64,000 bases of DNA. Source: Trichosphaerium sp. ATCC 40318 (taxonomy: Eukaryota > Protista > Tubulinea). The stretch lies in assembly GCA_038496445.1 (NCBI GenBank), contig JALMLS010000242.1, positions 35,090 to 99,089 of the forward strand, written 5' to 3'. Position 1 is the first letter of the stretch, and each line of letters begins with the position of its first letter. The notes beneath the pieces are model-generated. The model was not told the origin of the DNA. It was given only the letters and a program-made list of their open reading frames with translations, and did not search any database. The translations under genes were made by a program, and so were the position numbers. Below are positions 13,323-64,000 of this stretch, in pieces.

Positions 13323-16300
13323 ATGGCCAACATTGATAGTACAGACAACGGTAAGTGAAGCTCCTCAATTTTCAGCTCCATAAAAAAAAAAATTTGTCAC
13401 GTGCCATTACGATTTTCACGAGAAACGTTTCCGCTTTTCGGCGTGGGTTGCCCATTGCGAGAAAAATTCGCTGTAGCGTTTTTTGCACACAATTTTGGCG
13501 CTGTCACTAAACAAACAAAAGTGTTTGGTTTAGTATGTCCGTGCATAGGCAAGGCAACCCACAAATTATTAAATCTTTTTGTGTAAAGACTTTTGAAAAG
13601 TCCAAAGAAGTTTTCTCACTGAAAAAAACCAATTAAAAACATTGTTTGGCATCACTTCGCGTAGAGGATGCTACATAGGCATTTTTTCAACTTTTTGCAC
13701 AAAGTGAGGGAATCGCAAGAAACTCAAAAGTACTTTTTCGTAACCCATACTTTTTCGTGATATATTCAAAGCCTAAAAGATTTTTCTTTACTTAGTTGTG
13801 CTTATTTTACTCACAAAGGTTTGGACATAAAAGAAGAGTATGAAGTAGGAGGTCATCTCAGATATAGGGGAGAGGTAAAGAATGGCAAGCATGACGGTTT
13901 TGGTGAGCTGTATCATATAAAAGATATTGGCGAAATCAAACAAGGCGATACTCTCGAATACAAAGGTCAGTTTAAGGACAATAAGTTTCATGGTGATGGC
14001 GAGCTGTATCTCTCAGATGGTACTCTCGAATACAAAGGTCAGTTTAAGGACAATAAGTATCATGGTGATGGTGAGCTGTATCGCACAAATGGTACTCTCG
14101 CATACAAAGGTCAGTTTAAGGATGGTGAGGTTCATGGTGATGGTGAGTCTTATGTCTCAAATGGTACTCTCGCATACAAAGGTCAGTTTAAAGGCGGTTT
14201 ATATCATGGTGAGGGTGAGTTTTATTTACATGGTAGCCTCTATTACAAGGGTCAGTTTAAGGACCATTACCGTGATGGTTTTGGTGAGCTGTATCATATA
14301 AAAGATATTGGCAAAATCAAACAAGGTGATACTCTCAAATACAAAGGTCAGTTTGAGGCCAATAAGTTTCATGGTGATGGTAAGCTGTATCACACAAATG
14401 GTACTCTCGAATACAAAGGTCAGTTTAAGGACAATGAGTATCATGGTGATGGCGAGCTGTATCTCTCAGATGGTACTCTACAATACAAAGGCCAGTTTAA
14501 GGACAATGAGTATCATGGTGATGGTGAGCTGTATCTCTCAGATGGTACTCTACGATACAAAGGTCAATTTAAGAACAATCAGTATGAGGGTGTTGGAGTG
14601 TATTTTTATCAAAATGGTACCAAGTACATTGGGCAATTTGACAACAACAAGATTCAAGGTATTGGTGAGAAGTATTTGGCAGATGGTCGCAAATACATTG
14701 GTAAATTTGAGAATGCTAAGGCAGTAGGTAAAACACAGAAAAGTATTGCTGGAAAACCAGACCAGGCTGCCTTTTCTAACAACATGGATAAAACATTCTG
14801 TGAAGAATCCGTTTTTCCTAGCAATGATGTACAAGAAGATATAACACCAGTTACTGTGTGTTCTGATGGCACTACAGATGAGAGAGATCTCAAGAAATTG
14901 TTTCCGAATCCAGATAATACTATCCTTGATATCAATGATCCAACTGTACAAGGTATACCAGATGGAAAAAGAATGGTATTTGAATTTTATTCTAAAAGAC
15001 GCTACCAATACTGTAACAGTATTATTTTGAACCACCAAGATAGCTTTGAATCAGGTCTTTATGGTGATATTGTATTTATCTATGACCTTTGTAAAAAAGA
15101 TCCTGAGATATCACTTCATGAAGGTGCGGTGTCTTTTATACCACTACCTTTATACTTATTGATTATTTAAATAGTAACAACTATGGCACGTGGTCTTTCT
15201 GGAGTACGTGTGATACCCATAAAAAAGGACAAAATATCAGACAAAATGATACAACAGTTTAAACACATTTATTGGAGTGACCTCAGTAGTTTAATGAGAC
15301 ATCACATTGCTGATGGAGTGAGTCATAACAACTACGATTTTGTTGAGCAATTAGAAGCCAAAATAATGGTTGTAGGCCATGAAGGATCAGGTATTTAAGC
15401 TTGGATGAGTGATACACTAAATATTTATTAGGCAAGACAACACTTGTGAGGACATTGGCAAAGGAAACAAATATAATAGCGGATTCAACTATTGGTTTTG
15501 ATACATCACATCTCTCGTATGTTTAACTACTTTAGCGCTTGGGTTTAATGTGCTTTAGGTTCCAGGGCGTATCATTCACAGTGTTAGACTTTGCTGGACA
15601 GACGGAATACAAAGGATTACATAAGTACTTTTTAGCAAAGCAACTTACAATTTACATCATCGTTGTAAGTTCATAGTACACCAATATCACACTTGTTTCC
15701 TTATCATTCATCTTAGATTGACTTGTCAACATCAATCAAAGAGCAGCAGAAACACCTTAAATATTGGTGTCGGGCTTTAAATGAGATACTACATGATCAA
15801 GACCCAGAGCTATACTCAGTGATTGTATTTGGATCCAAGTTAGATATCTTTTTAGGCGATATCAAGGCCAATAAACAATCACTGCTCCCTATCGGACTAT
15901 CACTAGTACAGTACTTGTGCTTAGACGGTACCACCTTTATAACTTTTTTACAATCGCTTATTCTTTGTTGTTTAGGAACAAGTGCTCTTGTCAAATTATT
16001 GGATCAGCAAGCCAAGTACTTGAAGGCCCAATATCCAAAAGTACCATTGATCTACATTGACATAAAAAAAGCACTTGAGAATACAATCACAAACAAGGAT
16101 ACCCTAAAGGGTAACATCATATCAGTGTACGTTGTGTTTTAGCTGTAGTGGGTCTTGCTTTTGCTGATCAAGTATTTAATTAGGAGGAAAGTAGTAGAAC
16201 TGATACCCAAGATATGTGCAATGTCTCCAATAGAGTTGATTGCCGCATTAATTACCTTCATTCCATTGGTAGCATCATGTTTGATGAGGTGTGCGCTTCT

Positions 16301-19300
16301 CAAATGAGTAATATGCTTGCTTAAACAACTGACTTGTCTGCGTTTAGTCATCGTACACGCCATGTTTGAACCCTCCTATTCTATCTCGTATCATGAGTGC
16401 TTTTTTAGCACCCAAAGAACATCTTGATAGATTGATCAAAAACAACACTCATAGTCATCACGCTGTATTCACTGACTCAGAAGCTAAATCTCGAATCTCA
16501 AAGCTATTTCCAAAATGCACTAAACGTGAAGTGAAGCAGGTGATGAAATTCTTGGTACAAATGTCGTTCTGCGTTCGCTTGACAGAAGAAGAAAAGGTAA
16601 CAGATAGTGTATGTACTCTATAACTCATTGTCAATGTATTTATTCAGGTTGTGTATGGCGCTAATGGATACCTTATTATATCGCTATTACCTAAAGCTGA
16701 TATGTTTTACTTTCCTCCATTGACCCAAAAGGAGCAAAGTATTACGTTAGTTCAGACAAAGAACAAGTACCCACATGAGTTACCAGAAGTATTCTCTTTA
16801 TCTAAATCACCAACAAAGTGGAAGATATTATCGTACACACCTACAACAGACTCTAAAGTTGAACATAAAGTGGTAGAAATAGTCACCATAAACAAGGAAA
16901 CCAATAAAATAGTACGGCGTATTTCATATTCCATAACAATTCAAAACTAACAATATCACGTGTTAGTCACTACCTCATCAATATGAGGTCATACCACATG
17001 TTTCAAAGTTCTTGGCATACACCTTTAACTCACAAGATCTACCTATAGACATATTTAATGACTTGCAGAGAAGACTGAGAAGTACGCCAACATGAACGGT
17101 TTATGATCAGATACTAAACGCTAAAAATAGAGTTCCAAAACAAAGAGTTTCGTTTGTTTTCAAACTTGATTGTACTCTCTGATTTCTATGGCAATATCAT
17201 CACATTGTATTATGTTGATCATAGCATCAAAATTGTCATTAGAGGCATAGTACCACAGCTATGGATGGTAATAACATGAACAGAAGTTTAAACATTGACA
17301 TTTTTAGGAATCTCTTGATACATACCTAAAACCTTTGGACATCACTCCAATTCCGCTATGTCCAGTCAGCATACAATTTGGAGAGTTTGTTGAGGTCACA
17401 AACAATTTGTATGAGTGCAAGAAGATAAGTGAGTGTATTAGGCATACATTTATACACGTGTAGTTGTCATATATTATACAACTAGATGGCATATTTCCAA
17501 GTTAACAAACTGATTATTTCTTAGAACATGTTGTCACTGAGACTCATTTAAAAGAAGGATTTCCTGTACTCAAACATGCGAGACATAATCTGTGGGGTAG
17601 CTTGCATGGAGAAAGATTTCTAAAAATGGGTGACTGGGAAACACCTCAACAGTATCCTGGGTTACGAATCACGTTTCTCACAAAAGATGAAAAAAACAAA
17701 GTACAACCCACATTTGAATACCATGACTTTCTTACTAAAAGCATTGATAAGGAACGTTATGATGAGTATTTGAGAGCTAGCAACATGTTTTATGAGTTCA
17801 TGGGGACTGACAGTGCTTCATTTTATGAGTTGGAGAAGATTGCGTTCTTGAACAATCCAAAACTTGAAGACAAATTTGAGGAGCAATACAATACTTTTGT
17901 CAAGAAAGTACTTCAATCCAAAAAATCAGGCAAGTCACACCCTTGGTCAGCTTTTTCTAATAGTATAGATGTGAATGATGATTCTACTGTGGATGAAGAT
18001 ACACATAAATTACAAGAACGGACTTTGAATCATTTGAAGAGCCATGTGATGCGTGTTTCAGGCAATGAGCAAATCAACCTCATACCTGGATTACACGGTA
18101 CATCAGAGGTATATCACATTTATTCTCATTAGTACCAAGAAATAGTTAACCTTAGATTTTAGGATTCTAGTTTTAAGATCGCTTGGAACAACTTTAGAGA
18201 ACCACATGAGAATACAAACAAGAAAGATGGAGGATACTTTGGTATGGCTTAGTAATAAGTTAGTTTAATTAACTAAAAACTTACAAAGGAGCTGGTATTT
18301 ACTTCACTCAATACCCTGATTGTGGTAAGTCATTTTATACAATCAAAGCTCTCTCACTCAACCAATTTTGTATTCTTGTATTAACAATTGAGGTAGGAAG
18401 GAAGTATGCTGAATGGAACGGAGAGAAGAAACCACGCATGTTGATATCATGGATAATGATGGGAAAACCTTATCCAGTAACAGAGAAACCCATACCAGGT
18501 CCCAACTCTCTTTATGGCAAAGAATGCAAGGTACAACTCTTTTTTTCTTTATGTGACTGCTTATAGTTTTGTTTTTAGAAAGGTTATGATTCTCACTATG
18601 TCCTCACTAAATCATCAACTGGGCATCCATGTGGCATTGATGATAAAATAGATCAAAACGAGATTGTTGTATTTTCAAAAAACCAAGTATGTAGACATCA
18701 CCACGTAGCCTTTCTGCCATATTACAATGTGTTCTTATTTAATGATCTAGATTCTTCCACGATACCTTGTGTACTACAAAGCAATAGACAGTACCAATAT
18801 AGACTCATATGAACTCAAGTACAGGGATGCTAAATGTCTTGTTTTGTGGGTTGACGCTAATCTATCAGTTGAAAACAAGAAGATTATGGAAATGCTTAAA
18901 AACAGGCCAAAGAAGACAGAGGTACACAAACCAAATACAGCCATTCATCTAAAGAAATACAAAGGTGTTGGTGATGAAGTCATCATCTGCGGTTTTGGCA
19001 TGGATCGATAAGTTCAAAGGGTTCTGTAACAACAGATTACATATCATCACAAATAGATATCGAAAAGGTGATGGAGATGAGCTAGCAGCAGAGAAGTTGA
19101 TAAAGAGCATAAGAAAAATTAAAATATGTGCCAAAACACCTATTCTTGTTTTTTGTGGTATGTCAACTACCCCTTTATTAATCACGTGATTTTTTGTTAA
19201 CACACTGTTTGTTAGGAGACACGTCAAAGGCAAAATACCTCAAGAAAAAATACAAAAAGGTTTCCATCACGAATAAAGTTCAAGATGTATTGGAGATGTA

Positions 19301-19301
19301 A
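13323..19301 (+). CDS. ROCO-PARP protein copy 1: MORN repeats - linker - Roc - COR-like - ARTD/PARP catalytic - pseudo-receiver; start exon inferred
   Basis: Putative exon 1 MANIDSTDNG (13323-13350) splices in frame to 13819. About 12 MORN repeats (YKGQFKDNxYHGxGELY). Roc motifs: VGHEGSG|KTTL, STIGFD, VLDFAGQTEY, FGSKLD. COR-like YLHSIGSIMF..NPPILSRIM. ART motifs: LHGTS, GGYFG|AGIYF, MLISWIMMG, GYDSHY, QNEIVVF..Q|ILPRYLVYY. C-terminal VLWVDAN..IITNRYR..AAEKLIKSIR..PILVFCG. Confidence 0.85.
13866..14720 (+). repeat. Highly conserved 69-72-bp MORN-encoding tandem repeats
   Basis: Repeated TACAAAGGTCAGTTTAAGGACAAT...CATGGTGATGG.GAGCTGTAT; a longer unit carrying HIKDIGxIKQGDTL occurs twice (~13914 and ~14295). 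Confidence 0.9.
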
Positions 19302-22199: not shown

Positions 22200-25100
22200 T
22201 TACAGTACACAGTTGCTAGCAACCAGTTTTAAAAGCGCTGCTTTAAAACCCTTATAATTCTGGGTAGCAGCTTTGAGATAGCACTCAATATACTTGCTGC
22301 CAGTCACAACATCCCACGTCTTTTTAAGTATGGCAAGATTATCGATACTATCCTGTACCACCCAGTTGTTGTATGCAGTATCAATTGAAGTCTTCATGCG
22401 ATGATAACTGCAAGTATACAATGACACAAAGAAAGGAATACAAATCGCCAAATTGATTGTAGACATCGGTATCAGCTGATATTCTAGATTCTTTACCGTA
22501 CATATATGCCTAAACTTCCATCCCTCACGTCTTTTCATTTTTGTACCATCGCCTGAAGCACTTCCCCAACAGGTCAAGACATAGCGTGGATTTGTGGTAC
22601 CACAGCTCTCCATAATGGCTTTCTCTGTTATATTTCTACAACAAGAAGTTTAGTTCTTGGAAAAAAAACTGTAAGCGGTACCTGTGAACAATACCCCGCT
22701 TGTGCACTTCTTCTAGAGTATCAATGAGTTCCAATGCTTTTGTTATGTTGAATGTAGTTTCATCAGGTTTTACTAGATACTCCATTGTAATACCAGTTGA
22801 TGCAATATGATACTAGTAAGAGAATGAGTTTTGTTTCAAAGCTCTTCAAACGTACAACTTTGGGAACTCCAGGGATATTCACCAAGCGACTCAATACTTC
22901 TATTTCATTAGTGCCCAAGGATGCAGTTAAGTACTGTTTAAATGCCACTGGTTGTGGACTGCTACGAGTGCTGATGTCCACCTTGTAAATGGTAGCATTG
23001 AAACCTACTCCAAGTACTTCTGTAGGTGTATATTGCTTACCCGCAATTGTACATAATATTGGAGTATACCCAAGGTTTTCTAATGTTAGGCTTAGCAGGT
23101 GTAACAACTGCATTAGTCCCTCATCCGCAGTGTGAGAGATATTCAGCGCTCTGTACATAGCTGTAAAAAGAGATGTTATGTATTCAACACCTTTAGAGCC
23201 TAAAGCGTCACCAGGCGTGTCTGCTGTTTCTACCGTTTTCTTAAAAACGTCCATTACGTTTGTTTCAGTATAGCTGTATGATGGTCTCGAGGAATCATCC
23301 TTCAAAAGTGTCATTTTGAACATTTTAATTTTTACCATATTCTGAAGAATACCGTATACGTATTTGCGATGAGGTTGTGCTTCCATAATTGAATGCATAT
23401 TTTGCCATACTCTACCTTCCTCATCTGGAGTGAAATTATCTTCTAAACAATTCAATATGTAAGTCAAACTGGCTCAAGTTTGCGTACTAGAACAAAAAAC
23501 AATATTCCATGTCAACACGTGATGGTGCCACGTGAGTTCTCCATGTTCAGTATTTTGAAGCTGTTTTGGTACTACGACTATACCGGGGCTTGAAACAAAG
23601 GTATCATCTGGCCGGAGAAAGGCACTGAGGGTTTCAGTAATGGGTATGCATGTATCTTTATTTTCAACGGAGTTTCGAGGGTTCTTGGAACGAAAGAATG
23701 TGAATACCTCTAAGCAACGTTAGATAGTGCACCTTTGATACCTGTACCTTTTAATTTGATTTTATCAAAGAAGTGTTGATTTCTCTTCTTGGCACCGGTG
23801 CAAACATACGCAGTATCTTCCAATCCTTGTATTTCTTAGCACGTGTATTTTCAGAAAATTACAAAAAAACGTACTCATCTTCAGTTTTTCAGCTAAGTAC
23901 TGCTGTTTGCATTGGCGCTCTAGTTCTTTATACACTCTAGTTTCCTTTTTTTGTGTAAGTGGATTAGATCTTGTTGTTTGTTTTACTCTTATCAGCTTTA
24001 CTCTATCATTGCATGTGCATAGAGAAGGAAACTTTTTACATTTCTTGCAACGATTGTCAGCTGTACTTGAAATACAATTGAGGATTTCATTTAAAACACC
24101 TTTGTAGTCTATGGCATCTGCTCGTTGCAAACAACGTCTCCAATTGAAGGGAAGAACCCTTGCCCAAACCTTTTCTAGAGCTTCAGCGCGCACTCTTTTG
24201 AAAACCTGATTCCCCCTTGCGTGTGCCTCCAGAAAACCCTCATATGCTAAGTCGACTTTATCCTTGTTTTGTTTCGACATACAATAGTATGCCATCACAA
24301 AAATGAATGAGTACAAGTCATCCTTTGGTGTGTATGCATTACTGGAGAGGTACTAGCCCACGCTTCATACAATTGTGGAGCGAACATGAGACCCCCACTT
24401 AAACTAATTCGTCCAGTATCTGTTGTGGCGGCTCCCCAATCAATCAACATGTACCGTGGTTTTTCTTCTTTGCAAGTTGGTGGTAGTAGCATGATATTCG
24501 AAGTAGATATGTCTCTGTAGAAAATAAGAATGAGTTGTAAAAGGAATAGATAATATGTGGTTACTTGTGGATAACACCTCTACTGTGAACAATCTCAAGA
24601 GTTTCAATTATGTGTTTTGCAAGTAACTCAAAGTCAAACTCAGCGTCTCTGTAGCTTTGACAAATACAATCCATTGCAAATCCTACACCTGGGCTTCACC
24701 AACCTAAACAGCTTGAATAAAGTAGTATTGGTTGATTTGGAAAGAAATCGTTGATAAACACGTACAACTTTTGGAACACCAGGAACATCTTTGAGAAGAT
24801 GTAATATTCTCATTTCTCGATCCATTTTTGGCTTTATTGGGTCACCCTTATTAAAGTAATTCTTGAACGCAACATACTTTGGAGGATCATTGTTGGACAA
24901 GTATATCATGTAGACTGCTCCATGAGCACCTGTACCAAGCACTTTTCGAGGTACATACGCAAACCCATTGATTGTAAATACTTTCGAAATATATCCAAGA
25001 TCGCCAAGCTTGTAATTTAACAAACTTACCAAATGCTTTAGCCCTTCACCTGGAGCATCTGAATCAATTAAATCCATTTCGGGCGTCGAATAATACATGG

Positions 25101-26023: not shown

Positions 26024-26342
26024 TATGCTGTGCTAATAAAGTAAGCAAACAAGCGATTTAGAAAGTAGGTATTGCAGAAAACTGGATCTTAAATAAAATA
26101 CTGATAATTGCTTATACTGTAGTATGCACGCGCAGGTGCAGTGATTAAAGCGATTTAATTGTTGTGTAGATTGAAATTATTAAAAACAACTCAAAATAAG
26201 GTTTTTAGGTTTACGCCATAAGGACACGCACAAAGAAACCTGTTAGGCTAAAATTATCTATTATAAGACGTTTCCCGACTGTTCTAACTTGCTTGCTTCT
26301 GTGTACTTTAGCTGACTTGTCGAATTACGTAGAAGGTTGTTT

Positions 26343-26365
26343 ACCTTTTTAAGTAAGGTCAGAAC
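26343..26365. promoter_or_regulatory. Conserved imperfect palindrome ACCTT-N7-AAGGT-CAGAAC upstream of the kinase gene
   Basis: Near copies at 33112-33134, 36967-36987 and 37172-37195, each upstream of a kinase-family paralogue. Confidence 0.5.
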
Positions 26366-27296
26366 ATCACACAAAAACCACCAAGGTTTTTTTCCAACGT
26401 TCTGTAGGCACATGCCTCTTTTGGAAACCTTAGTTACCACTATTTTAATGGAATGTGATTCGATGTTGGGGTTATCGGAATTGACCTGGAAAATCGACAA
26501 AAAAGATTACTGATAATCACGTTTTCATTAGTTCGTCGGTAGTCATAACCTGAACATTCTATGGCTCAATATTTGATAAAATGGATCCAGGTGAATCAAA
26601 TATTTGTGGCTTGTTACAATGTACTGAATGCTTATTGTGATTAGATTAGGCAAAAAAATGAGATTATCAATATTCTTTTTGGTCGATAATCCTCAATTCC
26701 TTCCTTTAGTTTACATTTGAAATATCCGCGCTGCATTGTTGTATTTATTAGGAGCAGTTGAGCATGAGCAGCAAGACTGGACACTTGTAGATATATCACA
26801 AAGTGCAAAATTCACAGATCTTAGGTTCCCTTGGAAAGTTTCAAATCCGTCAAATCTGACACATTAGGGAATGACACGTACGTCAGGAATTGACTCATAA
26901 TATTGATAGTGTCAAAGCCAACAGTTCTGGGATCTTAATAATTTGAACTTGCAGCTTTATTTGTCGACCTCATATCCACTCCCTCCTACACTGGCTAGTT
27001 GTTCATTCCCAACTATCTTATAGACAGCTATACTTCTGTATAGAGTTACACAAAGTTTTCAACGCCTACTGGTAAGCATGCGAGAAGTTTCGTTTCCGTG
27101 TGTTGTACCAGATCTCTAATTGCTAGTAAGATAGTAAAGACGCGCAGAATAGGGTTTTAAGCGCATTGAAAGTAAAATATCTCAACGCAATGCAAGTAAA
27201 TCATAACACGTATCAACTCAAACGGATACGCTGGTGGTTTTATTTAAGTATACAACGTAGGTTTCGTATCGAATACATATCTATAAGCGTGAGCAT

Positions 27297-27536
27297 TCAG
27301 ATTACTCTAGCACGCCAATTTCGCCATTCCCAGGTCGTGCAATAGCCCATTGCTTTTCCTGTAATCTGCCTCCACCACAAATTCCTGCAATTACGAGTGT
27401 AAAAAGGGCGATACCTACTCAAGCATATCCTTTCGTTGTTACTACAACAGCAAACAGGTGATCTTATGAAACTTTGCACCTCTACAGCAACAAAAGCGAG
27501 CACTACTAACGCAAGGAGAAGGTGAGCTAAGCGCAT
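27297..27536 (-). CDS. Small secreted Cys/Arg/Trp-rich peptide (antimicrobial-peptide-like)
   Basis: Signal peptide MRLAHLLLALVVLAFVAVEVQS; 57-aa mature part with 6 Cys, 10 Arg, 5 Trp and only 2 acidic residues; intronless; AATAAA downstream. Confidence 0.75.
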   Translation of the reverse strand: MRLAHLLLALVVLAFVAVEVQSFIRSPVCCCSNNERICLSRYRPFYTRNCRNLWWRQITGKAMGYCTTWEWRNWRARVI

Positions 27537-28497
27537 TGTTGATAGTATTTTATGGCTAGAAAAGGGCGAAAACGACCCGATTTGACATCAAAGAAACCTA
27601 AAAAAGGAAGCGATCTTTCCCAACTAGCGCCTACCTAGAGAGAGTTAGTTAGTTATCATTGTTGGCCGCTACGCGTAGTAGATATTTACTTGACAACTAA
27701 AAGCAAAAGAACTGCTCTATCAAGGACATCCTGAGTTTAACTACGTGGGCCACAACGTTATACTAATTGCGTAAAAGTTTCATCATGCTGGGACTATTGG
27801 ACAATCTTTGCTGATTAGCGTTTGTTTAAGTGTGCAACGATGTTCATGAGCACTCCTATAACATTTGCAGCGCTTACACGTTTATCTATCTTTTATTTTT
27901 GTTCTCAACAATCGTTACAATTGACTGCAACAGTATACCCGCGCGTAGAGTTATCTATTTTTTAGGTTTAAAGCTGCGGAAAAAACCCTGGAAGCGACTT
28001 TAAGATCAAAACAAAGAAATATCTCGACAAGGCGACCTTCTAACATTGTGACCTTCCTCAAAACCTTTTCAATACCTCATGTTATACGTGATGGGGCGCT
28101 ATACTCTCACAGTGACGGACAAAATGAGTTTACGACTATAAGCCAAAGTCAACCACAAATTTGTTTTTGGAAGACTTCTAGTGCGCTAGTAGACTCCACA
28201 ACGACAAAAATCGGAGATTGATATGTCTATTTTGAGTAAGTCTAGAAAATTAGGGAAACGAAAGTAAATTTTTAATTAGTCGCTGCCACGTTAAACTGGA
28301 ACATACGATTCGATAAACTTGACATGCTTCGAATTGACTTGAACACCAAAAAAGGAAAAACTGCGTACTGTCTAAAACTAGCGTTACACACTCAATAACG
28401 AAGCGCAGGTACGTCTGACTTTAACGTCCTATAAAGCTATAACTCGCTAGTAAGTATTAACACGCCTTAGAAGCAATACAAGACAGTACAATTCGCT

Positions 28498-56743: not shown

Positions 56744-57102
56744 CAGCTAGTTATTTTTTTGTAGACAAGTCTATCACGTGACCACCTCCCAATGTATTGG
56801 TTGTGCACAAACAATAAATCACCTTGTGAACGATGGAACAACACTCCTGCCTGTAGTTTCCTTGGTGTTAGAAATATGTGGTGAACCAAAAAAAAGGTGA
56901 ACGAAGTGAGAATATTCGCTAGCTTTGTATGTATTCTAGAACGAGCTATTTAACAAAAAAAAGAGTGTAGTTTGCTACTGTAATAACAAATAAATCATTG
57001 AGTGGTTATTGTAAGAGGGAAATTCCTCACTGTAAAGTCACCCAATGTAAAATACCTGGATAATAAATGTGAGTTAAGAGTTACAACTTTACCTGTTACA
57101 TA

Positions 57103-57151
57103 TGGCGACCCTAGCAGGATTTGAACCTGCACAGCAGAGGGTCCAATAGAC
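57103..57151 (-). pseudogene. 3' half of a tRNA-Ser-like gene ending in GCCA
   Basis: Minus strand TCTATTGGACCCTCTGCTGTGCAGGTTCAAATCCTGCTAGGGTCG-CCA contains a variable arm, a T-arm (GCAGG/TTCAAAT/CCTGC) and an acceptor 3' strand. No D-arm or A-box was found upstream. Confidence 0.65.
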
Positions 57152-57228
57152 TGTATTCCTTTTCAGTTGTATTTGGATTTAGTAACAAAACTTTCAAGTG
57201 GTTGCCATATACTTGATGAGAGCTTTAT

Positions 57229-57666
57229 TTACATAAAGTTTTTTTTGAGGTATAAAAATACACCTCTTCTTTTTGAAAATCCCATTCTTTGTTTAGGTAC
57301 TGCATAAAGGGAATAACTTTCATCAGAAGATTTGAATGTATAAAGGAGTTTTTTGTCGTGCAACCAATCTGGGCTAACATAGGTACAAACCATTCCTTTT
57401 CCTCTCCCAATAACAGATACTCTACCAGGTAGAACAGTACTTGATGAATAAAGTGTTTTGGGTTCTGGGCATTTGATTTTAAAGCGCCTGGTATCTTTCG
57501 CTCCAAAGATTTTTCTACCGCGTTTTGGGGTGACTGTGATTGCACTTACGCCATCATACGTTGGTTGTCGTATATATTTCACTCGTTGGCGTTCATAACT
57601 AGCAGTAGTGCATTGAATAGATAATAATACTATCACAAACAGAACCAGAGAGTAAATGGTTGCCAT
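57229..57666 (-). CDS. Small secreted Lys/Arg-rich protein, unknown family
   Basis: Signal peptide MATIYSLVLFVIVLLSIQCTTA; intronless 145 aa; strongly basic, 2 Cys in the mature part. Confidence 0.7.
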   Translation of the reverse strand: MATIYSLVLFVIVLLSIQCTTASYERQRVKYIRQPTYDGVSAITVTPKRGRKIFGAKDTRRFKIKCPEPKTLYSSSTVLPGRVSVIGRGKGMVCTYVSPDWLHDKKLLYTFKSSDESYSLYAVPKQRMGFSKRRGVFLYLKKNFM

Positions 57667-58666
57667 GTTGTGCTATTTGTGCGAAAACTTGATGTTAATT
57701 AGGAATGTCCTTTCTTTTTTGGGATAGCTCCTTCCAAATACATGATTTGAAGTGTGTTGTCATCACCTTGGCGTAAAAATTCCATTATTAATATTCTCAC
57801 GTTGGATGTCGCTAATTTGACGAAAGATGTTCCTCGAGAACTGACCCGGATTATCGATCAACAAAATTAGCGATAATAATCCCAATTTTTAGTTTGTTAT
57901 TACCCATAACGTACATCTTTTTCATCCCTCATAGTTTACCCAATGGATGCTAGCATATATGTATGTATATATAACTAAACAGTTCTCCTTGTTAACATAC
58001 ACTAGATACTCACAGTGATGAACAAAACCGAGTGCAAAAATATGGACTATTGCTAATCTTTTTTATCGCTCTGCGCCAAATTCCGGCCATATTTTGTTGT
58101 AAAATTAGTCACACACGAAAGTATGACAATGTCCTTCATACATAGGAAATTCGTAGTTGGAAGTCCAATATCATTTGGGTAGCCAACACGCGAATCTTCG
58201 TATTTTGGTGAATCGCCCAAACAGTCAAGCAGAGTAAACTAACACGTGGCTCGAGCTTGTAGAAACCAGTAATTAGAGCTACTAATCGGTCAGAAAACAA
58301 TTAACCCTGATTTAAAAAAGGTACGGTAACAAGAATGGTAAAGCGGAATTGTTCCTCTCGTTCGAATTGGTATTTGTTTACAGATACTGACGTCATACTG
58401 TTGGCTATGTATCTACCATACCCGCCAATGGTGACATTTTGTGAAGGTCGGTTATAGACCCGAGCGATGCGACGAGCCCAACAAAAGGGAACAGCGGTCA
58501 TTGTAGCTAGTATTTGCTGTATTACATCTTTTCGAACAAACTCGAACAATTTTCGAACCAAATTTTTTTACCAGTTTTCTGTATATTAATCCATGATAGA
58601 AAAACTCGTTTTGTAAGCACGTGGACCATTTAATTCCTGTACAAGCTTTCGCTAGCATATTTCGAC

Positions 58667-61600
58667 ATGTCTGATCTTACGCCTACGGAACCAGGTACGT
58701 ACAATTTTTTCTATCCCAATTTAGACCACAAGCTCACGTTTTTTTTTTGTAAAATGCTGAAATGGTTCTTCAGCATGCCAAGAATCAATTGGTCAAAACA
58801 ACCCCAAAATATTTAGTGGTGTGAAGTCACGTGAACAAGCAAAAAAGAAAAAACAGCTTTTTCTTTTTAACGTTTTGATTTTGATCCCAAGTTGGTGCTA
58901 ATTGTGCTCATAAAGGTAAACAGCAGTATTTTACTGAGCTGCATAATGACGAAGGCACTCTCATATACAAAGGTAACTTTATGGACAGCACCTATCATGG
59001 TACTGGAGAGAAGTATAGGTCGTCAGATGGTACACTCTTATACAAAGGAAATTTTTCGCATGGTGATTACCATGGTACAGGACAATTATATTGGGGAAAT
59101 GGTAACATCCAACGTAAAGGTATATTTAAGTACAATCGCCTTCAGATAGGAGAGTGTTATAGGCAAGATGGTACACTCTTATACAAAGGAGAATTTGAGC
59201 AAGGTGATTACCATGGTACAGGACAATTATATTGGGGAAATGGTAACATCCAATATAAAGGTGAATTTAGGAATAATTGCCTTTGTAGAGGAGATTGTTA
59301 TAGGCAAGATGGTACCCTCCAATACAAAGGAGAATTTTGGGGCAACTCAAGATACATACCTAAATTTATGGGGACATTTCATGGTAAGGGAGTGTTTCTT
59401 TATCAAAATGGTACCAAGTACATTGGACAATTTGACAACGATAAGTTCCATGGTATTGGTGAGAAGTATTGGCCAGATGGTCGTAAATACATTGGTAAAT
59501 TTGAACACAACAAGAAGTCAGCAAGCGGCAGTAAAAAGCAGAAAACTATTGCTGGAAACCCAGATCAGGTTGCCTTTTCTAATATTGTGGATACAATATT
59601 CTCTTCCCCTAGCATAAAAAATATAGACGACCAAAGTATAATAGAAGAAGTTCGGGTGTTTACACAACATACTAGCGCTCACAGCAACTTATTTATGATT
59701 CCCAAAATCATCGATATTGCAACAGACAAATTAAACTTTATAGGCATGTGTACATCACAAAAAAAAGTATTTGAAGTATATTCTAAGAGTGAATGTATAT
59801 TGGTTAAAGATGCTATAAAGCAGCACCAAGCAGTACAAAAATATGGCAACAATGTAGATTGTTATTGTGATTTTGTATTTATCTATGACCTTTGTAAAAA
59901 AGATCCTGAGATATCACTTCATGAAGGTGCGGTGTCTTTTATACCACTATCTTTATACTTATTGATTATTTAAATAGTAACAACTATGGCACGTGGTATT
60001 TCTAGAGCACGTGTGATACCCATAAAAAAGGACACGCTATCAGACGAAAAGATACAACAGTTCCGATATTACTTTCGGTATGGTTGTGACAAACTGGATT
60101 CGGTAATTAGCTGTGGTATTGTTAATGGAGTGTCATGAAAAATATGATTTTGATGGTTCTGAGCAATTGGAAGCTAAAATAATGGTTATGGGACATGAAG
60201 GATCAGGTATTTTATCAAAGTCGGATGATTGATGATACTCTAATTATTAATTAGGCAAGACAACACTTGTGAGGACATTGGCAAAGGAAACAAATAGAAT
60301 AGCGGATTCAACAATTGGTTTTGATACATCACATCTCTCGTATGTTCTATGTTATGGTGCCATAACTTTAATCCAATTTAGTTTACATGGCGTATCATTC
60401 ACAGTGTTAGACTTTGCTGGACAGACGGAATATAAAGGATTACATAAGTACTTTTTAGCAAGGCAACTCACTATTTACATCATCGTTGTAAGTTCATAGT
60501 GCACCAATATCACGCTTGCTTCCTTATCATTCACCAACTTTAGATTGACTTGTCAACATCAATCAAAGAGCAACAGGAGCACCTCAAATATTGGTGTCGG
60601 GCTTTAAATGAGATACTATTTGGCCAAGATCCAAAGTTATACTCGGTGATTGTATTTGGATCCAAATTGGATATCTTTTTAGGAGATATCAAGGCCAATA
60701 AACAAGCATTGATTCCTATAGGACTATCACTAGTACAGTACTTATGCTTAGACGGTACCACCTTTATACGTTTTTACAATCGCTTATCCTTACTGTTTAG
60801 GAACAAGTGCTCTCGTCAAATTATTGGAGCATCAAGCCAAGTACTTGAAGGCCCAATATCCTAGAGTACCTTCAATGTACATAGATATCAAGAATGCACT
60901 TGAGAAAATCACAAACAAGGATACTCTTAAGGACAACATCATATCAATGTACGTTGTGTTAGTGTATTTAATATTGTCACTAACTAGTACTCAGAAAGAA
61001 GCTAATAGAAGAAAAGTTTATTAAAAAGTCCACTACATGTATAATGTCTCCAATAGAGTTGGTTGCTGCATTAAATTACATTCATTCCATTGGTAGCATC
61101 ATGTTTGATGAGGTATGTGCTTCTTCAACTAGGAGTATACTTGCTTAACAAACTGATTTTACCATATTTAGTCGTCATACATGCTGTGTTTGCACCCTCC
61201 TATTCTATCTCGTATCATGAGTGCTTTTCTAGCACCCAAAGAACATCTTGATAGATTGATCAAAAACAACACTCATAATCATCATGCTGTATTCACTGAC
61301 TCAGAAGCTAAATCTCGAATCTCAAAGCTATTTCCAAAATGCACTAAACGTGAAGTGAAGCAGGTGATGAAATTCTTGGTACAAATGTCGTTCTGCGTTC
61401 GCTTGACAGAAGAAGAAAAGGTAACAGATAGTGTATGTACTCTACAACTTTTTCTCAATGTAGTTATTCAGGTTGTGTATGGCGCTGATGGATACCTTAT
61501 TATATCGCTATTACCTAAAGCTGATATGCTTTACTTTCCTCCATTGACCCAAAAGGAGCAAAGTATTACGTTAGTTCAGACAAAGAACAAAAACTCACAT

Positions 61601-64000
61601 GAGTTACCAGAAGTATTCTCTTTGTCTAAATCACCAACAAAGTGGAAGATATTATCATACACACCTACAACAGACTCTAAAGTTGAACATAAAGTGATAG
61701 AAACAGTCACCATAAACAAGGAAAGCAATAAAATAGTACGGCATATTCCATAATTCAAAACTAACAATATCACGTGTTAGTCACTACCTGATCAATATGA
61801 GGTCATACCACATGTTTCAAAGTTCTTGGCATACACTTTTAACTCGCAAGATCTACCTATAGAAATATTTAATGACTTGCAGAGAAGACTGAGAAGTATG
61901 CCAACATGAACGGTTTATGATTATGATTAGATACTAAACACTTGTACAATAGAGTTCCAAAACAAAGAGTTTCGTTTGTTTTCAAACTTGATTGTACTCT
62001 CTGATTTCTACGGCAATATCATCACATTATATTATATTGATCATAGCATCAAAGTTATCATTAGAGGGATAGTACCACAGCTATGGACGGTAATAACAAA
62101 TCATCAAGCGAAATTATCTGATAACATCTTTAGGTATCTCTTGATGCTTATTTAAAATCTTTGGACATCACTCCAGTTCCACTCTGTCCTATTAGCGTAC
62201 AATTTGGAGAGTTTGTTGAAGTTACAAACAGTTCATACACATGCAATAAAACAAGTGCGTTTTTTGGCATACAAGTTAACAAACTGATCATTTGTTAGAA
62301 CATGTTGTCACTGAGAGTCATTTAAAAGAAGGATTTCCTTTACAAAAACGTGGACGACATAATCTATGGGGTAGCCTGCACGGAGAAAAATTTCTGAAAA
62401 TAGGTGACTGGGAAACACCTCAAAAGTATCCTGGGTTACAAATCACGTTTCTCACAAAAGATGAGAAAAGCAAGGTACAAACCACATTTGAATACCATGA
62501 CTTTCTTACTAATTGATATAAGGCGTTATGATGAGTATCTGAGGGCTAGCAACATGTTTTATAAGTTCATGGGGACTGACAGTGCTTCATTTTATGAGTT
62601 GGAGAAGATTGCGTTCTTTAACAATCCAAAACTTGAGGAGAGGAGCAATACAATACTTTTGTCAAGAAAGTACTTCAATCCAAAAAATCAGGCAAGTCAC
62701 ACCCTTGGTCAGCTTTCCCCAACAGTTTAGATGTGAATGACAATTCCACTGTGGATGAAGATACACGTAAATCACAAGAACGGACTCTGAATCATTTGAA
62801 GAGCTATGTGATGCGTGTTTCAGGCAATGAGCAAATCAACCTCATACCTGGATTACACGGTACATCAGAGGTACATCACATTTATTTTCATCAGTACCTA
62901 ACCTTAGATTTTAGGATACTAGTTTTAAGATCGCTTTGGGCAACTTTAAAGAACCTCAGGAGAATACAAACAAGAAAGATGGAGGATACTTTGGTATGGC
63001 TTAGTAATAAGTTAGTTTAATTTACTAATTGTAACCAGGAAATGGGATTTACTTTACTCAGTATCCTGATTGCGGTATGTCATTTTATACAACTCTTGGC
63101 CACTACCCATGTACCAATTTGTATTATTGTATTAACAATCGAGGTAGGAAGGAAGTATGCTGAATGGGATAAAAAGGAGAAGAATCCGTGCATGTTGATA
63201 TCATGGATAATGATGGGAAACCCTTATCCAGCAACAGAAAACCCTGTACCAGGTGATCCCAACTCTCTTTATGGAAAAGAATGCAAGGTACAACTCTTTT
63301 TTCTTTATGGACTTCTTATACTTTTGTTTTTAGAAAGGTTATGATTCTCACTATGTACTCACTAAATCAACTGGGTTTCCATGTGGCATTGACGATAAAT
63401 AGATCAAAATGAGATTGTTGTATTTTCAAAAAACAAGTATGTAGACATCACCATAGCCATCAATGTGTTTTATTCATGATTTAGATTCTTCCACGATACT
63501 TGTATACTACAAAGCAATAGACAGTACCAATATCAACTCATATGAACTCAAGTACAGGGATGCTAAATGTCTTGTTTTGTGGGTTGACGCTAATCTATCA
63601 GTTGAAAACAAGAAGATTATGGAAATGCTTCAAAAAGGCCAAAGAAGACAGAGGTACACAAACCAAATACAGCCATTCATCTAAAGAACTACAAAGGTAT
63701 TGGTAATGAAGTCATCATTTGAGGTCTTGGCATGGATTGATAAGTTCAAAGGGTTCTGTAACAACAGGTTACGTATCATCACAAATAGATATCGAAAAGG
63801 CGATGGAAATGAGAAGGCAGCAGAGAATTGATCAAGAGCATTAGAAAAATGAAAACATGTGCCAAAACCTATTCTTGTTTTTTGTGGTATGTTAACTACC
63901 CTTTTATTAATCACGTGATTTTTTGTTAACAAGTATTAGGAGACGTGTCGAAGGCAAAACACCTCAGAAAAAAAATACAAGGTATCCATCACGAATAAAG
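58667..64000 (+). pseudogene. ROCO-PARP copy 2 with multiple frameshifts (pseudogene, or partly assembly errors); runs off the window end
   Basis: Same exon order as copy 1. Lesions relative to copy 1: ~2-nt deletion at ~60132, 5-nt at ~62511, 7-nt at ~62640, and several 1-2-nt deletions between 63395 and 63870. Confidence 0.75.

Follow-up and report, generated by a model that had tools for sequence, protein, structure and literature searches.

The two MORN-Roc genes carried by a 64,000-nucleotide stretch of the amoeba Trichosphaerium sp. ATCC 40318 (the window; contig C206:35090-99089 of an AT-rich, intron-dense, 70-Mb genome) represent, as far as their sequences tell, two old subfamilies that both have several other members in the genome, and are no recent duplicates of each other. 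Both genes, copy A and copy B, belong to one family and lie on the + strand (Table 1). We consider it probable that the mixture of dissimilar front ends and closely matching back halves arose from an old subfamily split, followed by patchy gene conversion of the gene body, near-neutral evolution of a linker block and independent turnover of the MORN arrays. An earlier note on this DNA had taken A and B for recent duplicates with swapped or hyper-divergent N-terminal sensors and near-identical effector halves, and had suggested diversifying selection or module shuffling at the recognition end. Its observation is partly confirmed by what follows, and its interpretation partly supported.

The boundary between the two halves is real and sharp, and lies at 15059/59862. 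In a blastn comparison, 15059-19278 of A matches 59862-64000 of B at 86.4% identity over 4285 columns, close to the point (~15070/59872) from which the copies had been said to align closely, introns included; the agreement is uneven, as identity in 150-nt sliding windows ranges from 0.68 to 0.98 and that of introns from 58 to 98%. The introns downstream of the boundary are alignable, at 82.6% on average. Upstream, the last MORN units and the linker match at 81.3% (14595-14799 with 59389-59602), and between the two matches blastn finds nothing in the 259 nt of either copy (14800-15058 and 59603-59861). Forced into a multiple alignment this block is 46.7% identical, with 29% amino-acid identity over 77 codons, which bears out the description of a segment of ~90 residues that can barely be aligned. 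The near-identical flanks ascribed to it exist on the downstream side (97%, with intron 2 at 98%) and not on the upstream side (81%). Further upstream, promoter, exon 1 and intron 1 gave no blastn alignment between A and B. An origin of the 259-nt block by inversion or by a pair of frameshifts was ruled out, since blastn on both strands found no similarity and the protein homology lies in the same frame.

The block is nevertheless no foreign insertion. In a protein alignment of all types it shows common motifs with its elements in the same order, and it is therefore homologous and fast-evolving. The idea of a swapped N-terminus, foreign and non-homologous, is not supported by this alignment across all subfamilies, nor by the shared layout of a 28-nt exon 1 followed by one long exon 2 in both window copies.

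Searching the genome with copy A brought out at least twelve close copies, named here after their contigs. The A-type 5' module is found in seven of them (C194, three on C185, C27, C344 and C112) and the B-type module in three (C354, C443 and C590). In B, C354, C443 and C590 the match to A ends at one place, A 15059-15064. The nearest relative of A is the C194 copy, at 95-98%, and that of B is the C354 copy, at 99.5% over 6.3 kb followed by abrupt divergence, with C590 also close. The recent duplication proposed for A and B is thus wrong.

The back half itself is a mosaic, in which 95-98% identical blocks, with their introns, are interspersed with blocks of 58-80%. Types A and B separate cleanly in blocks R4, R5b and R7 (15166-15340, 16101-16389 and 17171-17464), where identity is 75-80% between types and 89-99% within them, and do not separate in R6 and R10 (16390-17170 and 18421-19300). 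In R9 (18231-18420), C194 has B-like sequence, though it is sister to A everywhere else. The introns, as neutral sites, repeat this pattern: between A and B, introns 4, 7, 8 and 12 are 58-69% identical, comparable with 51-69% against the outgroup C116, and introns 2, 5, 9, 10, 11, 14, 21 and 22 are 90-98% identical. The synonymous distance dS between A and B is uneven as well: it is lowest in the COR-like region (0.08), followed by the C-terminal exons (0.17-0.23), Roc (0.32), exons 12-13 (0.38) and the left flank (0.48), and highest in the variable block (0.88).

Gene trees conflict along the gene. In maximum-likelihood (ML) trees the combined blocks R4, R5b and R7 split the types at 100/100 support, and in R6 the types are monophyletic in 0% of bootstrap trees. 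Approximately unbiased (AU) tests rejected B-type monophyly in R6 (p = 0.019), a clade of A and C194 in R9 (p = 1.8e-87), and, for the type-specific blocks, the grouping seen in R6 (p = 2.4e-7). Among 1073 polymorphic sites, a Sawyer-type runs test detected shared runs between A and B (16464-16614, P = 0.0055), C194 and B (16386-16614, P = 0.0005), A and C443 (P = 0.0065), and C185a and C112 (P = 0.001). Conflict between trees and runs of shared sites, the two features by which a family under interlocus gene conversion is recognised, are thus both present, and together they point to gene conversion among the paralogues. The module shuffling of the earlier note is supported in the broad sense of an exchange of segments among paralogues. 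The strongest single case is the comparison of B with C590: exons 9-16 and their introns are 98-100% identical with dS of 0-0.04, and the variable block of the same pair shows 42% amino-acid identity and dS of 0.59. Since selection at the protein level cannot raise dS, this contrast argues that the segments differ in ancestry.

Rates of protein change were obtained from Nei-Gojobori counts and from an ML codon model. By the counts, the ratio of nonsynonymous to synonymous rates (dN/dS, or omega) is 0.16-0.35 in the gene body in all comparisons and ~1 in the variable block; in the last MORN units and linker it is 0.2-0.5 between types and deeper, rising to ~0.8 in very close pairs with few differences. 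For this left flank, omega is put at 0.3-0.44. The ML omega of the block is 0.99 among seven A-type copies, 1.46 among three B-type copies and 0.94 among all eleven. A value of 1 is not rejected (twice the log-likelihood difference, 2dlnL, at most 0.19) and a value of 0.5 is (2dlnL 10.2 and 19.6). Only in pairs of the C185b lineage does the pairwise ratio of the block reach 2.5-3.7, with an uncorrected P of ~0.03. The block's dS is as high as its dN, suggesting old lineages that were kept from homogenisation rather than fast change in place, and a mosaic of ancestries accounts for the pattern better than in-place selection does. An AlphaFold model of 170 residues starting at A 14613 (last MORN units, linker and block) had a mean predicted local distance difference test (pLDDT) score of 58, too poor for a fold search, with residues 41-76 (linker and start of the block) below 50. 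The first third of the linker block is thus probably disordered, and part of the supposed sensor may simply be a flexible linker.

The MORN arrays follow a course of their own. Both consensus strings quoted in the earlier note are present, and the arrays of A and B differ in number and consensus as it said. Across the family a copy has 3-14 MORN motifs with type-specific periodicities, and units within an array match at 80-87% by Tandem Repeats Finder (TRF); the arrays turn over by tandem duplication. Among 37 distinct 24-residue units from A-type arrays, variation falls at non-scaffold positions, where omega is 1.37, which is not significant (2dlnL 1.58), against 0.63 at scaffold positions.

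We propose the following course of events. A single dispersed multigene family would have split long ago into subfamilies, as suggested by unconverted blocks with dS of ~0.3-0.5 and by introns of which some are saturated. Ectopic gene conversion among paralogues would then have repeatedly overwritten parts of the gene body with the sequence of a relative, in tracts of ~100-230 bp up to roughly 1.8 kb, leaving 95-100% identical blocks in which introns are included. The 5' module, comprising promoter, exon 1, intron 1, MORN array, linker block and the first half of exon 3, would have stayed subfamily-specific, with the linker block evolving at about the neutral rate and the MORN arrays changing independently through tandem duplication and loss of units. 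Because the linker block would be too divergent for homology-dependent exchange, conversion tracts would end at its edge, which may account for the sharpness of the boundary. Copy B has died since. The data show the mosaic itself, the conflict between trees, the omega values and the lesions of B; that gene conversion was the mechanism, its direction and the cause of the sharp boundary are what we infer. Several points weigh against this scenario. Conversion is deduced from one assembly, in which some near-identical copies, such as B and C354, may represent alleles or haplotigs and not separate paralogues. The high ratios in the C185b lineage hint at episodic positive selection, and a mean omega of ~1 in a block whose motifs are conserved and whose frame is open in all intact copies may conceal some sites above 1. 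The dS of the block is close to saturation and depends on the alignment, and older ancestry and faster change are not fully separable between A and B.

Table 1. Features of the two MORN-Roc genes, in positions of the window
Feature	Position	Strand	Remarks
Copy A, 23-exon gene	13323..19301	+	MORN array - linker/variable block - Roc GTPase - COR-like - PARP-like - receiver-like tail (COR and PARP labels putative)
Copy A MORN array	13851..14721	+	11 YxGxF motifs; 72-nt units and a 381-nt higher-order duplication (TRF)
Copy A hyper-divergent pre-Roc block (~87 codons)	14800..15058	+	No blastn match to B; dN 0.90, dS 0.88; ML omega 0.99
Conserved island, 97% identical to B	15059..15230	+	End of exon 2, intron 2 (15124-15174; 98%), start of exon 3; A-B dS = 0
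Copy A exon 8: its single deletion, 1 nt in a run of A	16249	+	Absent from 11 other copies compared
Best-supported candidate between-type conversion tract	16386..16614	+	C194 = B at 41 consecutive polymorphic sites; A = B over 16464-16614
Copy B, B-type paralogue, pseudogene	58668..64000	+	Cut by contig end ~23 nt before the stop codon
Copy B exon 2	58916..59926	+	Open frame; 7 MORN motifs; 141-nt two-unit period at 59025-59337 (TRF)
Copy B hyper-divergent pre-Roc block	59603..59861	+	Protein identity 53% to C590, 50% to C443, 43% to C116, 36% to A-type
2-nt deletion in GT repeat, exon 3 of copy B	60131	+	Private to B, absent from C354 twin
Exon 15 lesions of copy B	62523..62639	+	2-nt deletion at 62523 (also in C354), 7-nt at 62639; codons between out of frame
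Seven frameshifting deletions, exons 20-23 of copy B	63397..63973	+	Include the exon with the putative catalytic Glu motif

Under diversifying selection on a recognition module, as in NLR-type immune receptors, differences in the MORN array and the 90-residue block would be favoured because both would bind variable ligands. Such selection would fit a block omega 3-5 times the value found elsewhere in the gene and higher still in the C185b lineage, an A-B dN in the block (0.90) that exceeds both the dS of the flank and the distances of unconverted introns, the concentration of MORN variation at non-scaffold positions and the highly variable repeat number; it has precedents in brown-algal ROCOs (PMC11378527) and fungal NLRs (PMC4986451). 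It does not fit the 5' non-coding DNA, since promoter and intron 1 are equally unalignable between types, which selection on the protein cannot explain. Nor does any test reject omega = 1 (2dlnL 0.0-0.19 in the block), and the block, partly predicted to be disordered and with dS as high as dN, belongs to a family without a known ligand or immune role. A dN/dS above 1 is thus not demonstrated at the recognition end, although the values there (0.94-1.46 in the block, 1.37 at non-scaffold MORN positions) lie clearly above those of the gene body. As divergence is not uniform, dN/dS is not well below 1 and breakpoints were found, the idea is neither shown nor refuted; diversifying selection is possible but unproven, and we think it unlikely to be the main cause.

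A single recent recombination, in which a foreign or distant 5' module was grafted onto a young duplicate whose back half shows its true age, would account for the sharp breakpoint common to the B-type copies at 15059-15064 and for a difference that extends over the whole 5' region, non-coding DNA included. This is largely refuted and very improbable: the genome holds no donor, as B-type copies are the only ones that the 5' module of B matches, apart from a weaker match to C116; just ahead of the block, the linker and terminal MORN units show 81-83% identity and a dS of 0.48, like the unconverted blocks of the body; and the body, with several deeply diverged blocks and saturated introns, is not uniformly young. 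We give hardly any credence to errors of assembly, whether collapsed or chimeric paralogues or false indels, or to decay of the pseudogene B alone. Copy B does lie at a contig end, is a pseudogene, differs from C354 by small indels at repeats, and has in C354 a 99.5% twin that diverges abruptly at window position 63397. Seven copies, however, keep intact frames of ~1200 codons, and the ~25 kb of coding sequence that they represent implies a low rate of indel errors. Moreover, the block pattern recurs in comparisons with C443, a B-type copy that is intact, and among the A-type copies that are intact, and exon 2 of B, which holds the divergent parts, has an open frame.

With the old split and patchy conversion in mind, one may speculate on a role for the family as a protist repertoire for self/non-self recognition or pathogen sensing. 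According to this speculation, old N-terminal specificity cassettes (MORN array and 90-residue block) would be kept diverse by balancing or diversifying selection, and conversion would recombine them onto a homogenised Roc-ADP-ribosyltransferase body, with dead copies such as B serving as donors. We regard this as quite unlikely.

Copy B is a pseudogene. Compared with the seven intact copies it has at least ten frameshifting deletions (60131, 62523, 62639, 63397, 63433, 63498, 63631, 63827, 63866 and 63973); at 62639, where B lost 7 nt, C354 lost 12. The lesions cluster in the PARP-like and receiver-like exons, so that the effector half of B is dead; exon 2 retains an open frame. RNA data were thin and gave no evidence specific to B, as one run contained 7% of the sequence words of B. 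Three short spliced RNA contigs from that run are 95-99% alike and derive from paralogues; they confirm two introns of the gene model, 61896-61952 and 62255-62298, rather than expression of B. Copy A has a lesion of its own in exon 8, which is more likely real than an assembly error, given the ~25 kb of coding sequence free of frameshifts in the intact copies.

The twin of B spans window 57102-63397, corresponding to C354:3482-9778 (loci L010 and L032), with 20 mismatches and 5 gaps, and breaks inside exon 20; it is either an allele or haplotig that differs in structure or the product of a very recent segmental duplication. Three inverted, partial back-half copies, 89-92% identical to A, lie downstream of it on C354 (C354:20180-22140(-), 23201-24794(-) and 26108-28063(+); loci L013-L015), suggesting a rearranged graveyard of fragments. 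In C194, ~5 kb (C194:84344-89339, between loci L016 and L002) split the closest relative of copy A inside its MORN array. A 69%-identical paralogue on contig C130 (L018) has an N-terminal open reading frame (ORF) with what appears by eye to be an F-box motif before only 3-4 MORN units, so that front ends vary in kind and not only in repeat number.

The exon model on which these comparisons rest was established on copy A and is shared by copy B up to the contig end. The introns of A end in AG in 22/22 cases and start with GT in 21/22, intron 15 being GC-AG; intron 1 is 468 nt long and introns 2-22 are 39-96 nt. Comparison of paralogues revealed two additional introns within one apparent exon, recognised by indels of lengths not divisible by three, by a stop codon that one copy has there and by GTAAGT/GCAAGT donors. 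Applied to the paralogues, the model gives uninterrupted ORFs in seven of them, each ~1200 codons long and running from the last MORN unit through to the stop, which validates it. The 39-nt GC-AG intron at window 17930-17968 has the donor GCAAGT in most copies and GTAAGT in C27 and C116; in copy A it can be read through in frame and risks being taken for coding sequence.

Of the ROCO-PARP name given to these genes, the Roc part stands. Pfam detects MORN repeats (PF02493, cut-off 22.5) in exon 2 of A (92.8 bits, six stretches) and of B (35.8 bits, two stretches), and the Roc domain (PF08477) in the copy B ORF at 60251-60496 (29.4 bits against a cut-off of 27, E 1e-6), the exon fragment of copy A alone scoring 20.2 bits against the same cut-off. 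The GTPase motifs are a P-loop, GHEGSGKTT, across exons 3 and 4, and DFAGQ (DxxGQ) in exon 5. Searches were made exon by exon, and exons were joined only for codon statistics and one local profile comparison. The COR and PARP labels remain putative, since exon-level searches of Pfam and the Protein Data Bank (PDB) did not confirm them. Six-frame searches of the genome gave 43 matches to COR-A (PF16095) and 91 to PARP (PF00644), 0 of either in the MORN-Roc family, and Pfam scans at E up to 10 of the exons for the variable block and for the putative PARP, COR and receiver regions returned nothing useful. For the putative COR region, exons 9-10, there was no Pfam match; its language-model features lie nearest to clusters carrying COR-A/COR-B (score 0.81), which is a lead only. 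A phmmer search with the 193-residue read-through ORF of copy B exons 9-10 against 1.84 billion representatives gave a single weak match (E 1e-3), so that it offered no database relatives from which annotation could be carried over. For the putative PARP region, PDB sequence searches with three exons found no match. Read by eye, its LHGTSE, GIYF and NEIVVF motifs stand in H-Y-E order, ~34 and 88 residues apart, the spacings in a genuine PARP ORF of this amoeba being 38 and 85, and a local profile of the C-terminal part of the family aligns its Y and E motifs weakly with that ORF (15.3 bits; hhalign probability 8%). Outside the MORN-Roc family the genome holds many canonical loci, 86 PARP-profile candidates and 43 COR-A-profile loci, and large Roco and PARP repertoires therefore coexist with this family.

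Among known systems, the lettuce RGC2 'type I' genes, a plant NLR cluster, reportedly exchange sequence often and are chimeric paralogues made by gene conversion or unequal crossing-over, with trees that conflict along the gene. The amoeba copies resemble them in chimerism and tree conflict, but they belong to a different protein family, are dispersed on many contigs, and exchange mainly the signalling body rather than the sensor repeats. The nearest precedents are the ROCO families of brown algae, in which repeat exons are shuffled (PMC11378527), and the repeats of fungal NLRs (PMC4986451). Brown algae have expanded LRR-ROC-COR (ROCO) families proposed to act as immune receptors (PMC11378527), and they share with the amoeba genes a large lineage-specific family, a conserved Roc core and N-terminal repeats that vary by shuffling or duplication of units. 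The algal repeats are LRRs with one exon per repeat, whereas the amoeba repeats are MORN units, all in one exon; the amoeba family also has the extra hyper-divergent block, and a PARP-like output region where the algal proteins have none, and its main signal is homogenisation of the body by gene conversion, with diversifying selection not demonstrated. Fungal NLRs with highly conserved, hypervariable WD/ANK/TPR repeats likewise have similar units, repeat numbers that differ from copy to copy and position-specific variation (PMC4986451; PMC12222747). In fungi, defined positions have been shown to be under positive selection and repeat length to be polymorphic between strains (PMC4986451; PMC12222747), in contrast to a non-significant non-scaffold omega here and a repeat number compared between paralogues of one assembly; against the fungal criterion of >85% unit conservation we judge the amoeba arrays to be at or below 85%. 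With Roco proteins such as LRRK2 and the Dictyostelium Rocos (PMC6337361) the family shares a Roc GTPase with G1 (GxxxxGKT) and G3 (DxxGQ) motifs in a large multidomain amoeba protein; it differs in having no kinase and a COR region that Pfam COR-A does not recognise. The review of Rocos mentions neither MORN nor ADP-ribosyl domains (PMC6337361).

If the front ends are specificity cassettes, this family would be a third independent case of a variable sensor on a conserved switch, after the plant and fungal NLRs and the brown-algal ROCOs, and such a receptor design would here be built on a LRRK2-type GTPase with a possibly ADP-ribosylating output. In practical terms, a single gene tree is unfit for this family, dN/dS estimates or dating need a prior partition by conversion tracts, and copy B does not merit annotation as a functional gene.

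The motif TCACGTGWT occurs at 32 sites in the window, for example at 16956, 19182, 61770 and 63911, where ~1 is expected and 0 of 100 shuffles reach 32. Within copies A and B it is located in introns 10 and 22.

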